The notes under the pieces were generated by a model, which did not search any database, had not been told where the DNA came from, and saw only the letters and a program-made list of their open reading frames with translations. DNA of 64,000 nucleotides from Obrimoposthia wandeli (taxonomy: Eukaryota). Positions 47,176 through 50,356 of the stretch are shown here, in pieces. The stretch's first letter is position 1; each line of letters begins with the position of its first letter. The position numbers and the translations under genes were made by a program. Location of the stretch: the NCBI GenBank assembly GCA_977020255.1, contig CDROCS010001089.1, positions 558,001-622,000 on the forward strand. The letters run 5' to 3'.

Positions 47176-47586
47176 TTGGTAAATACAATGAATAATTCTG
47201 AAAAAACTATCTCGGCCAAAGGCGAATTAAGTTTAATGATACCCGCTGATAGCCAAGCTAAGAATATGTTTGGTGATATTTTTAGTGGTTGGGTGGCTTC
47301 TAAAGCGGTGCTTGCAGCAGAAGTGCGTTCTGGGAAAATATCAAAAGGGCGTGTCGCGACTATCTCTGTGGGAGCGATGGAGTTTATGTCTCCAGTTTTA
47401 GAAGGCACTATTTTGAGTTATTACACGACGCTAGTTGAGCAAGGTAATAGTTCTATGACTATCAAAGTAGAAGTTTGGGGAAATTGCCCAGATGGTTCTG
47501 ATTCGCGGAAAATATCAGAGACTAGCTGTGTTCAAGTCGCTATTGATGGCCATGGGCACATCAGAAGTTTGAGCTTCGGTCAGTAA
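47176..47586 (+). CDS. Acyl-CoA thioesterase (YciA-like hotdog fold)
   Basis: MFGDIFSGWV, GRVATISV..MEFMSPV, GNSSMTIKVEVW. Confidence 0.88.
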   Translation: MVNTMNNSEKTISAKGELSLMIPADSQAKNMFGDIFSGWVASKAVLAAEVRSGKISKGRVATISVGAMEFMSPVLEGTILSYYTTLVEQGNSSMTIKVEVWGNCPDGSDSRKISETSCVQVAIDGHGHIRSLSFGQ

Positions 47587-47602
47587 TTAAATTGGTATAG
47601 TG

Positions 47603-47625
47603 TTTACGCACATGATGTGCGTAAA
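47603..47625 (+). terminator. Hairpin after thioesterase gene
   Basis: TTTACGCACA-TGA-TGTGCGTAAA. Confidence 0.7.
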
Positions 47626-48069
47626 GTAGAGAGGCGTTTATCAACCTCAGATGTAGAGCGAATTCTATTGGTAGTTTGAGTGTAAGCTTCTTTTATAACA
47701 TTATATTTGTACACAGACCTGCGCATAACTTACCAAAAGAACATGATAACTGTACTCAGTAATGCAGTGCAAAATGCTTTTTACCCCCCCACCCCATTAC
47801 TCCTCGTAATATCCCTAAACAAGGAGCATTGACTTCGCTGTTTCGCCTGTTTTGATTAAAACCCTGGGCCAGCTAAAGCTGCTGTTTAGATTCTGCTCCG
47901 GTTGTTTGTTTTATTATCGCTCTATGCTCTATGCAGAGATCTCTACACGCAAGCAGTGATAATAGTTTATTTAATATGAGAGCAATGCGAAATAGGTTTT
48001 AATTGGTATTAATAGCGAAGGTTATTACAGGTTAAAAATGACTGGGAGACTCATCGGAGTATTATCTAA

Positions 48070-48241
48070 AGTAAGGGGTAGAAGATAGTGGTAAGAATCA
48101 TCCTGAAAATACCACTACCTTTACTCCCTATAGCATCGCATCCTGCGCTACTTCACTGAATCATCCTTGTCAGCGTTGTGTCCCTTTCCTAGGGTAATCT
48201 TTTTATCATATCATCCTGATATAAAAAGAAAGTAGACTGCA
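48070..48241 (-). ncRNA. Candidate CsrB/RsmY/RsmZ-type CsrA-sequestering small RNA (ends approximate)
   Basis: Seven GGA triplets on the minus strand between 48101 and 48216, five in hairpin loops: ATATC-AGGAT-GATAT, CCCT-AGGAA-AGGG, CTGA-CAAGGATGAT-TCAG, GC-AGGAT-GC within TAGC/GCTA, TAGTGGTA-(..CAGGATG..)-TACCACTA. Extended -10 TG-T-TATGAT at 48249-48257. Confidence 0.75.
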
Positions 48242-48362
48242 TGGAGCTATCATAACAGTGGAGTTGTCCAATTTGTTAGACACTATAATAATTAGGAGTT
48301 TTTCCTAGATAGAAAATTAAAATTTAAGAATGGCTAAAATTAATTTGGGCTAGATATATATT

Positions 48363-49028
48363 TTATATGGCGACAACTTTAATTAAGCAGCTTAGCGGTT
48401 GCCTCTCAGGGAAAATGACTTGATTGTTAATGTCCACGCATTTCCATTCAGAAATTACCCGACAAAGCGTACTTGGCGCCCTAAATTTCACTGAAAGGCT
48501 AGTGCGCTCGCCAGGCTCTGTGTAGGGAATTTTAATCTTGGAAAACTCAGGAATAAGACAATTGCTAACACCAAGTTTTTCTCTAGCAGCACTTCCTGAT
48601 AAAAAGGCTTCTTCGCATAATGTGTCATCATCAATATCTAGACACTTTAAAAAATAATCTTTCCATGCTGTCTTTCCGGTGTTGATAACAGACCAAGTTT
48701 TAACAAAAAACTGATCTGGGAAAACAGATGAATTATCGGGGTAAGTTATATCAGTGATAAATTCGGTGTCCAGAACCTTGGTTGTGGCTGACAGTTTACG
48801 ATCTGTAATATTCTCGCTGAAATATGGGGTTAGTAACTCAATAGGGTGGGCATCAAGTGCAGCGGCTATTTTAATTAACGTTGAGAGGCGAGCTTCGCTA
48901 ACATTACCTTGCAACACGTTATACAAAGTTGCTCTGGAGATGCCGCTGTTTAGCGCGAGTTGTTTTTTAGTGATGTTTTTAGTAACAATCAAATCATTTA
49001 AAACAGCTTTAAAACGAGAATTATTCAT
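48363..49028 (-). CDS. XRE-family HTH fused to NBR1-type FW (Ig-like) domain
   Basis: N-term ITKKQLALNSGISRATLYNV..ARLSTLIKIA; C-term FITDITYPDN..FVKTWSVINTGKTAW..PGERTSLSVKFRAP..ISEW. Confidence 0.8.
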   Translation of the reverse strand: MNNSRFKAVLNDLIVTKNITKKQLALNSGISRATLYNVLQGNVSEARLSTLIKIAAALDAHPIELLTPYFSENITDRKLSATTKVLDTEFITDITYPDNSSVFPDQFFVKTWSVINTGKTAWKDYFLKCLDIDDDTLCEEAFLSGSAAREKLGVSNCLIPEFSKIKIPYTEPGERTSLSVKFRAPSTLCRVISEWKCVDINNQVIFPERQPLSCLIKVVAI

Positions 49029-49186
49029 AATGCTCAGTCATCTCTAGCGAAGGATCTTAAAGTGATGTTTAGCATAGTCTTAAGTGAGGTCGCTTTTCAA
49101 TGAAAAGCTGATTGCCTCTCGCAATTATCTGATTTTTTGAGTAACTTATACTTTTTCAGCATAGTGTGAATGAGCGAAACAAATCA

Positions 49187-50356
49187 ATGATTAATACAAT
49201 ATCGATTAGTAACTATCGCTCACTGCGCAATTTGGTGATACCGCTAGACTGTTTAAACGTAGTGACAGGAGCCAATGCTAGTGGTAAATCTAACTTGTAT
49301 AAAGCGTTGCGTTTATTAGCAGAAACCGCACAAGGTGGTGTGGTGAATGCGCTTGCTAAAGAAGGCGGGCTAGAATCTACCTTCTGGGCTGGACCTGAAA
49401 ACATCTCCAAGAGAATGATCAGCGGTGAAGTACCTGTACAAGGAGGCCCTAAAGCTAATAGAACACGCTTAAGGCTCGGGTTTTCAGGAGATGATTTTGG
49501 CTATGCTATTTCTTTAGGTTTACCTGTGCCTTCTAATTCAGCGTTTGCATTGGATCCTGAAATTAAGAGGGAAACGATTTGGGCAGGTAATAGTTATCGC
49601 CATGCCAGCGCCTTAATTGATCGAGATGCGGCAGTGATTAAAACGAGAGCAGGTAGAAGCTGGGAAGTGTTGATGCAACAAGCCAATACTTTCGATAGCT
49701 TGTATAGCCAAATAGCCGATCCAGTCAGAACACCAGAAGTGGTTAGTTTAAGGGATAATATACGAGCTTGGCGGTTTTATGATCACTTTAGAACAGATGC
49801 CGATGCACCGGCAAGGCAGCCGCAATTAGGTACGCGCACACCAGTATTACATCACGATGGCCACGATTTAGCTGCAGCGCTGCAAACCATTAAAGAAATA
49901 GGTGATGTACAAGCGTTAACCAGCGCAGTAAGTGACGCATTTCCCGGCGCAAAATTGAGCATCGATATTCAACACGATGGGCGATTTGCCATTCAATTTA
50001 GTCAGTATGGTTTGCTTAGGCCTTTATCAGGGTTAGAGCTGTCCGATGGCACTCTTAGATATTTACTGTGGGTAGCCGTGCTTTTAACCCCAAGGCCGCC
50101 GCCTTTAATGGTATTGAATGAGCCGGAAACGAGTTTGCATCCTGACTTATTGCCTGCACTGGCAAGGTTAATCATTAAAGCCGCTGAGTCGACTCAAGTG
50201 TGGGTCGTCTCTCATGCGCCTCGTTTAATCGCAGCTTTAGAGCAGGCAAAGAACTGCAATTCAATCCGTTTAGATAAGGAGCTTGGCCAAACAAAAGTGG
50301 TCGGCCAAGGGATGCTCGATGCACCGATGTGGGCTTGGCCCGATGGTGGTAAGTAA
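49187..50356 (+). CDS. Stand-alone ABC/SMC-like (AAA_21-type) ATPase
   Basis: Walker A GANASGKS, signature LSDGT, Walker B MVLNEPE, H-loop VSH; upstream GTG 49166 possible. Confidence 0.85.
   Translation: MINTISISNYRSLRNLVIPLDCLNVVTGANASGKSNLYKALRLLAETAQGGVVNALAKEGGLESTFWAGPENISKRMISGEVPVQGGPKANRTRLRLGFSGDDFGYAISLGLPVPSNSAFALDPEIKRETIWAGNSYRHASALIDRDAAVIKTRAGRSWEVLMQQANTFDSLYSQIADPVRTPEVVSLRDNIRAWRFYDHFRTDADAPARQPQLGTRTPVLHHDGHDLAAALQTIKEIGDVQALTSAVSDAFPGAKLSIDIQHDGRFAIQFSQYGLLRPLSGLELSDGTLRYLLWVAVLLTPRPPPLMVLNEPETSLHPDLLPALARLIIKAAESTQVWVVSHAPRLIAALEQAKNCNSIRLDKELGQTKVVGQGMLDAPMWAWPDGGK

Follow-up and report, generated by a model that had tools for sequence, protein, structure and literature searches.

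A conserved GGA-hairpin RNA on a Nitrincolaceae contig, most likely a lineage-specific member of the Csr/Rsm sponge RNAs

The minus strand between positions 48242 and 48070 of a 64,000-nucleotide (nt) stretch of contig CDROCS010001089.1 (C1089; positions 558,001-622,000, assembly GCA_977020255.1) quite probably encodes a stand-alone regulatory RNA of ~170 nt belonging to the Csr/Rsm class. The whole stretch is referred to as the window, and all positions are counted within it. Judged from its sequence, the locus is a genuine, conserved and structured non-coding RNA gene that is separately promoted and yields a predicted transcript; the RNA most likely belongs to the Csr/Rsm sponge RNAs as a lineage-specific representative. 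CsrA is a master post-transcriptional switch in Gammaproteobacteria, acting on carbon use, motility, biofilm formation and host association, and the sponge RNAs of the Csr system evolve fast and are unannotated in most non-model lineages. A compact Csr-type RNA of ~170 nt had been proposed in a preliminary description of this DNA, and the proposal was upheld by a conserved fold, five AGGA motifs in loops, orthologues with compensatory changes, a shared promoter palindrome and a csrA gene of the same lineage in the assembly. Transcription, the exact RNA ends and binding of CsrA are predictions. The small RNA (sRNA) and its promoter comprise the following elements, where G189 and G190 are two related genomes carrying orthologues and R2 is a covariance model, all of them introduced below.

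48070-48242, minus strand: predicted sRNA of ~173 nt (RNAfold z score, footprint against G189, R2 hits, compensatory changes)
48198-48229, minus strand: hairpin 1, a bulged stem with loop AGGAU at 48217-48213 (probability of GGA being unpaired 1.00)
48182-48194, minus strand: hairpin 2, CCCU-AGGAA-AGGG (probability of being unpaired 0.99-1.00)
48154-48175, minus strand: hairpin 3, with loop CAAGGAUGAU (probability of being unpaired 0.99-1.00)
48137-48147, minus strand: hairpin 4, CGC-AGGAU-GCG, extendable to UAGC/GCUA (RNAfold)
48074-48129, minus strand: long terminal hairpin whose apical loop carries AGGAU, a likely terminator (fold, conservation)
48249-48257, minus strand: extended -10 element TGTTATGAT, 100% identical in G189 and reading TGTTAACCT at the same spacing in G190
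48265-48282, minus strand: proximal 18-bp imperfect palindrome TGTCTAACAAATTGGACA at ~-40 to -23, a candidate operator (conservation)
48293-48307, minus strand: distal palindrome TAGGAAAAACTCCTA centred at ~-58, a candidate upstream activating site (conservation, shared box)

Seven GGA triplets were located on the minus strand within ~115 nt, at 48216, 48189, 48183, 48166, 48143, 48127 and 48103, and four of them were part of an AGGATG; both numbers had been given in the preliminary description and were the same on recounting. When both strands of the window were scanned (128 kb of strand), GGA occurred 0.78 times per 120 nt on average, and the seven triplets of the candidate were the maximum, the next highest count being five. 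The chance expectation of 1.4 stated earlier was too high, and the true GGA enrichment is therefore stronger than had been assumed. The four AGGATG motifs compare with a window mean of 0.02 per 120 nt, and no other such cluster was present in the window. Folding of the candidate RNA with RNAfold gave -52.5 kcal/mol (z = -3.24), and none of 200 shuffled sequences was equally stable. All five hairpins named in the preliminary description were recovered by this folding, which it had suggested as a check, together with every structural detail listed there. Provided that the RNA starts no earlier than 48242, the five AGGA motifs had probabilities of being unpaired of 0.82-1.0; the two GGGA motifs of the RNA fell in stems. 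By the strictest count, four GGA lay wholly inside hairpin loops, whereas the best of 1000 dinucleotide shuffles had 3 and their mean was 0.28; the fifth is placed in a 3-nt apical loop of the terminal hairpin in part of the ensemble only. Hairpin 4 depended on the start site, with a probability of being unpaired of 0.96-1.00 for a start at or after 48242 and of 0.4-0.5 for a start at 48245. The predicted 5' end would lie 7 nt after the -10 element and the 3' end after the terminal hairpin. Hairpin 3 contains the sequence ACAAGGAUGA, which is near the optimum for CsrA obtained by systematic evolution of ligands by exponential enrichment (SELEX). No open reading frame of at least 30 amino acids (aa) overlapped positions 47960-48362 on either strand.

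The source assembly (G000; 1.35 Gb in 6912 contigs) comprises host and microbial DNA; many contigs are AT-rich and eukaryotic, and several are bacterial. The PstS protein encoded in the window shared 91% identity with its counterpart in 'Osedax' symbiont bacterium Rs2 and ~90% with proteins of metagenome-assembled genomes labelled Nitrincolaceae/Oceanospirillaceae, and the pst operon with its neighbours was syntenic with Nitrincolaceae and Osedax-symbiont genomes at 70-93% aa identity. On the basis of this PstS identity and pst synteny the sRNA element was assigned to a Nitrincolaceae bacterium; by its sequence, contig C1089 is that of a Nitrincolaceae (Oceanospirillales-type) gammaproteobacterium living with, or contaminating, the eukaryotic host sample. 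Blastn searches with the sRNA gave no match in 80 pstS-syntenic loci and in the five genomes first taken as closest. Synteny was kept up to the thioesterase gene and broke exactly at the sRNA. Among 190 genomes of the family, blastn detected an orthologue in G189 (C203:8810-9043) with 88% identity over 238 nt. The gene order there was the same as in the window, namely pstS, the thioesterase gene, the sRNA, a gene for an XRE-type regulator with an FW domain (XRE-FW) and an ATPase gene. Identity between the two loci varied along the element as follows.

XRE-FW 3' coding region: 88%
Spacer from the XRE-FW stop codon to the distal box: 56%
Distal box: 100%
Proximal palindrome core (17 nt): 100%
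Extended -10 element: 100%
The 12 nt between the -10 element and the first stem: 50%
sRNA core: 94%
Terminal hairpin: 83%
Tail: 63%

Wherever a paired position was substituted in G189, pairing was preserved; in hairpin 3, for example, an A-U pair was changed to G-U and the stem was retained. Covariance model R2, built from the window and G189 sequences, matched a further locus in a relative diverged by 50% (G190:C11:57549-57736; 48.9 bits, E ~3e-10), the scores of the window and of G189 being 227 and 210.9 bits. Folded alone, the G190 RNA had a z score of -4.61 and the architecture of the candidate. It formed a closing stem and a multiloop with three hairpins; behind these came hairpin four and a terminator hairpin, to which a canonical U-tract was attached. 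Every loop contained GGA, including the apical one of the terminator hairpin. The full-length R2 match, an XRE-FW gene upstream and both palindromes were found together in the window, in G189 and in G190. In the three-sequence alignment 96.3% of the cells paired, and compensatory changes on both sides were observed at 18 of 55 pairs, compared with 6.6 +/- 2.0 in shuffles (none of 500 reached 18) and with 1-4 in slid controls. The stem of hairpin 1 was preserved in G190 through a U-A to G-C exchange and other changes, hairpin 2 was substituted by a different stem, again with GGA in its loop, and in the terminal hairpin 7 of the 13 inner pairs were changed on both sides. A functionless element, either a chance GGA-rich spacer or the decaying remnant of a mobile element, might be suspected from the position of the locus at a synteny breakpoint and beside a 411-bp insertion. 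This is extremely unlikely, since the sRNA core was more conserved than the neighbouring coding sequence (94% versus 88% in G189), compensatory changes and a strong fold were found again in the diverged G190, and GGA density and loop statistics were extreme; the conservation and the covariation together all but exclude either origin. A mobile element was likewise rejected, as the sRNA locus was syntenic in G189 and single-copy in the whole assembly, which contains two related Nitrincolaceae strains.

The same comparison bears on coding capacity. Alternatively or additionally, the RNA could serve as a leaderless mRNA and encode a peptide of 17 residues (MQSTFFLYQDDMIKRLP), the start of which, at 48242, coincides with the predicted transcription start. 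Its ATG lies 7 nt after the -10 element, and the frame is open in G189, where all three nucleotide differences fall at third codon positions. In G190, however, the start codon is GTG, radical changes (T to I, F to C and L to S) are present and the stop is found at codon 29; within the stems of the RNA, the changes in question are compensatory. A Shine-Dalgarno sequence was not detected, and the 94% conservation extends well beyond the stop codon. A peptide-coding function is considered very unlikely.

Evidence for a separate promoter came from the region upstream of the RNA. The extended -10 element noted in the preliminary description was present at 48257-48249, pointing into the RNA and fully conserved in G189. 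Of the proximal palindrome, the 17-nt core GTCTAACAAATTGGACA was identical in G189 and the first T of the 18-bp palindrome differed; in G190 it read TGTCCAACAAATTAGACA with unchanged spacing. This palindrome occurred a single time in the 64-kb window and was not found in the promoters of other Nitrincolaceae GGA sRNAs. The distal box, TAGGAAAAACTCCTAA at 48307-48292, was the sole match in the window to the loose pattern TAGGAANNNNYYCTWA, for which 0.07 matches were expected; the distal palindrome was identical in G189 and read TAGGAATAAGTCTTA in G190. The stretch between the distal box and the first stem aligned in the three promoters without any indel. The gene preceding this promoter is the following.

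48363-49028, minus strand: XRE-type helix-turn-helix regulator with a C-terminal NBR1-like (FW / N_BRCA1_IG) domain (Pfam HTH_26/HTH_3 and PF16158)

This gene had been described as lying ~120 bp upstream of the RNA and co-oriented with it, and its stop codon at 48363, on the same strand, agrees with that. The RNA might accordingly be a structured 3' untranslated region of the XRE-FW mRNA, produced by read-through or processing, instead of an independent gene; it begins 120 nt past the stop codon on the same strand, no terminator was called in between, and the linkage to XRE-FW is conserved. The spacer after the stop codon is, however, poorly conserved (56%), and two palindromes and an extended -10 element at fixed spacing in three genomes form the signature of a separate promoter. 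Because these promoter elements are conserved behind a poorly conserved spacer, an independent start is favoured and an origin as 3' untranslated region is quite unlikely, although read-through from XRE-FW may be an additional source of the RNA.

From these elements, the following mode of action is proposed for the sRNA as a Csr sponge. The RNA would be transcribed from its own promoter, consisting of the extended -10 element, the proximal palindrome over the -35 region and the distal palindrome at ~-58. Its fold would be a closed multi-branch body of four short hairpins with the long terminal hairpin behind it, and AGGA would be presented in the loops of all five. These loops would mimic CsrA target sites and bind two to three CsrA dimers, which would thereby be drawn away from their mRNA targets. 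The distal palindrome would probably be bound by a GacA-like response regulator of the NarL family; binding of the TAGGAA..TCCTA palindrome by a diverged GacA-like regulator is a reasonable inference. For the proximal palindrome, the binding factor may be encoded by the adjacent XRE-FW gene.

An XRE-FW homologue was located directly upstream of the sRNA in G189 (86% aa identity) and in G190 (53% aa identity), where the neighbourhood was otherwise different from that of the window. Homologues in G037 and G134 (43% and 35% identity) had no sRNA behind them, and the linkage of XRE-FW and sRNA is therefore limited to a closer clade. The ATPase gene adjoined XRE-FW in G189 and was not found in the 4.5-kb stretch around the G190 locus, so that the conserved unit consists of XRE-FW and the sRNA. 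It is possible, though doubtful, that the two form a portable module in which a ligand-sensing XRE regulator with its NBR1-like FW domain would control a private CsrA sponge through the proximal palindrome TGTCYAACAAATTRGACA. If true, the module would constitute an input into the Csr system that is independent of BarA/UvrY-GacS/GacA, in a lineage without a UvrY/GacA equivalog at threshold level. To our knowledge, a Csr sponge with a dedicated regulator gene next to it has not been described. The pairing with XRE-FW is the one unusual feature of the locus and could reveal a new input into Csr control; what goes beyond the routine is this conserved pairing with its private palindrome over the -35 region, together with a promoter box that is non-canonical and family-wide. 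In the region 48363-50356, XRE-FW is transcribed divergently from the ATPase gene, which encodes a protein of the AAA_21/AAA_15 type with weak similarity to defence-system ATPases (MAD3 and the retron Eco8 effector).

Both partners of a Csr sponge were searched for in the assembly. A check for csrA had been recommended in the preliminary description; the gene was found elsewhere in the assembly, with an equivalog of the same lineage on contig C1295 that passed both NCBIfam equivalog cut-offs (118.6 bits, cut-off 73). This contig matched the relatives G001-G003 at 78-80% DNA identity, the same distance as that of the window, and the other five csrA loci of the assembly belonged to other bacteria. 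UvrY/GacA equivalogs above the cut-off were present on C5135, C506, C129, C253 and C6805, of which C506 and C253 also carried csrA genes of other bacteria. In five relatives, two of them with box-preceded GGA RNAs, no UvrY/GacA match was obtained at E<=1e-60.

Several observations weigh against the assignment to the Csr/Rsm class or against parts of it. With Rfam 15 at gathering thresholds no match was obtained anywhere in the window, and the Csr/Rsm models (RF00018, RF00084, RF00166, RF00195, rsmX and related ones) gave none at E<=10 in 47500-48500; the comparison with the CsrB/CsrC/RsmY/PrrB_RsmZ families recommended earlier thus turned out negative. In public sequencing runs the locus was found only in DNA contigs of one study and in 0 RNA runs. 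The covariation derives from three sequences only, in an alignment fitted to the model. Two of the 12 species in the GTDB genus gave an R2 match, and the rest of the 151 sampled genomes from the family gave none; because just these two species carry it, the sRNA is, by its distribution, an accessory gene travelling with XRE-FW, and as a sponge it would be accessory and not core. The terminal stem followed by a U-rich run in the preliminary description held with respect to the hairpin; the run was moderately U-rich at most, being weak here and in G189, and a terminator scan made no call at this site. The csrA gene on C1295 is placed in the same cell as C1089 by relatedness and not by linkage, and two related strains are present in the assembly. 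The best NarL-type regulator of the lineage, a 216-aa protein in two near-identical copies on C84 and C2735, had the UvrY/GacA model NF007018 as its top match and scored 177.7 bits against a cut-off of 280; it was not located beside uvrC. The lineage thus yielded no UvrY/GacA equivalog above the NCBIfam cut-off when this recommended check was made. Upstream of the RNA, the canonical GacA box TGTAAGN6CTTACA was absent, the best alignment (48309-48292) matching 4/6 positions of one half-site and 1/6 of the other. Since neither an equivalog above the cut-off nor a canonical GacA box was found, the Gac part of the model in the preliminary description is unconfirmed.

Some of these points would also fit a real structured sRNA that is not a CsrA sponge and acts by base-pairing with mRNA or through another protein, for example in a private XRE-FW circuit, with the GGA loops serving another partner. 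Linkage to the XRE-FW gene in all three genomes, down to 53% aa identity and in differing neighbourhoods, is consistent with this, as are the occurrence in 2 of 12 species and the lack of canonical Gac elements. The AGGA loops are, however, exactly what is conserved while stems and linkers drift, and loop sequences, ACAAGGAUGA among them, agree with the optimum of CsrA; other multi-GGA RNAs of the family have the distal box as well, and no long single-stranded seed region is conserved. A role other than that of a sponge is hence regarded as unlikely.

Compared with known systems, the candidate falls into the size class (~100-180 nt) of RsmY/RsmZ of Pseudomonas and RsmY/Z of Legionella (110-130 nt; RF00195, RF00166). 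Like these RNAs it has between four and seven GGA motifs, of which most lie in short-hairpin loops, a GGA-bearing end hairpin and a palindromic upstream site, and its predicted action is titration of CsrA/RsmA dimers. Unlike them, it shows no similarity in sequence or to covariance models, its palindrome is TAGGAA-N3-TCCTA and not TGTAAGN6CTTACA, and it possesses a second palindrome over the -35 region; its gene is tied to that of XRE-FW and is accessory within the genus. The repeat of CsrB (CAGGAUG / AAGGAUG), known together with CsrC from Enterobacteria, Vibrio and Marinomonas mediterranea (RF00018, RF00084), equals the repeated loop motif of the candidate. RNAs of the CsrB type are, however, 350-450 nt long with ~18-22 sites, whereas the candidate has five sites and no Rfam CsrB match. 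Lineage-specific Csr RNAs that were missed by sequence search have been described in Marinomonas, also of the Oceanospirillales type, with the same criteria as used here, i.e. intergenic position, AGGA/ANGGA density, an upstream box, a terminator and csrA (PMC8523701). A canonical GacA box was reported for those RNAs (PMC8523701), whereas the candidate is without that box. Alcanivorax dieselolei, a marine bacterium of the Oceanospirillales type, possesses the CsrA-related sRNAs CsrR1 and CsrR2, which carry 5-9 GGA motifs in loops and fall outside the classic families (PMC9788540). These two come from another family, have no detectable homology to the candidate and are supported by differential RNA sequencing, whereas the candidate is known from sequence alone. 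In view of the precedents in Marinomonas (PMC8523701) and Alcanivorax (PMC9788540), in both of which sequence search had overlooked lineage-specific Csr sRNAs, a new lineage-specific member was to be expected.

A scan of 190 family genomes for three AGGATG motifs within short gaps revealed many clear multi-GGA-hairpin RNAs. Those at L128-L132, L102, L185 and L032/L022 come from several genera, are unannotated and have at least four hairpins with A(A)GGA(U) loops; the RNAs of L128-L132 have four hairpins with visible compensatory changes. None of these RNAs attained an Rfam gathering score, and two longer GGA-repeat RNAs of the family gave sub-threshold matches to Rfam CsrB (34.7 and 25.4 bits). 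Near-identical distal boxes (TTAGGAATTTTTCYTATA / TAGGAATTATTCCTA) preceded the RNAs at all of these loci (L128-L132, L102, L185, L032 and L022). The candidate thus shares with them the family, the distal box and hairpins with A(A)GGA(U) loops, whereas they are without the proximal palindrome and are not situated beside an XRE-FW gene. When covariance model R1, built from L128-L132 only and without the candidate, was run on the window, the candidate was the top match, a weak one (16.5 bits, E ~0.01, versus 10.1 bits for the next) with the register shifted by one hairpin; because of this shift, the match was read as shared modules and not as collinear homology. Collinear homology with the G101-type RNAs is not claimed, as the MAFFT alignment was out of register. 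GGA-hairpin RNAs that lack annotation and follow a common, non-canonical promoter box are family-wide in Nitrincolaceae, and the locus provides a testable sponge candidate for a member of this family that is closely related to heterotrophic Osedax (bone worm) symbionts. Models R1 and R2 could seed an Rfam family, and the RNAs of L128-L132, L102, L185 and L032/L022 could together seed a new RNA family. The GGA RNAs of L032 (Aliamphritea spongicola; 2585-2990) are arranged in tandem ~7 kb upstream of pstS, and a tandem arrangement was also observed in L022 (2640-3050).

Further searches gave spurious or unrelated matches. RF00166 matched only 3' ends of coding genes and terminators in five relatives. 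The pattern of three AGGATG motifs was swamped by host eukaryotic repeats in the assembly, and a metagenome scan with a three-loop pattern returned 14 loci, none of them an orthologue, with one unrelated CsrB-like RNA and otherwise repeats or coding sequence. Six assembly matches of the G101-type box pattern (L203-L208) were AT-rich chance matches in the host genome, and a search for the promoter box in G001-G005 found no sRNA, the boxes there lying beside ordinary genes.

The palindrome TAGGAAAAATTCCTA (or TAGGAAAATATCCTAA) was also observed in intergenic regions beside ordinary genes of several family genomes (L186, L187, L188, L195, L150, L161 and L152), and it was kept between species, e.g. 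in G001 and G002, where it lies in the gap separating gloB from a lipoprotein gene. Its position next to ordinary genes and its retention between species suggest that the regulon of the distal-type palindrome is wider than the sRNAs.

Downstream of the sRNA the window differs from G189 by an additional segment.

47598-48009, no strand assigned: 411-bp insertion lying outside the sRNA (missing at the orthologous locus of G189)

The insertion is flanked by 12-nt direct repeats, TTAAATTGGTAT and TTTAATTGGTAT, at 47587-47598 and 47998-48009, and no second copy was found in the window or the compared loci. A GAGGA hairpin at 47796-47810, which had been thought to mark a longer isoform of the RNA, does exist; the longer isoform fails because this hairpin belongs to the strain-specific insertion and lies outside the conserved element. 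A perfect 11-bp hairpin at 47603-47625, just past the thioesterase stop codon, is also part of the insertion.

The two closely related Nitrincolaceae strains or species of the assembly were recognized at L198 (C84) and L199 (C2735), which share a syntenic block of 5.7 kb with 94-99% aa identity. In many genomes of the family, arrays of ~26-nt and ~50-nt units (GTTCAGGATGAAC... / GCAAGGATGC...) directly followed gene terminators (L120, L121, L100, L111, L138-L140 and L097), including G185 and G002 of the same genus. The array at L120 gave a weak Rfam CsrB match of 25.4 bits, and the arrays may represent either the main CsrB-like RNA of the family or a repeat resembling repetitive extragenic palindromic (REP) elements.

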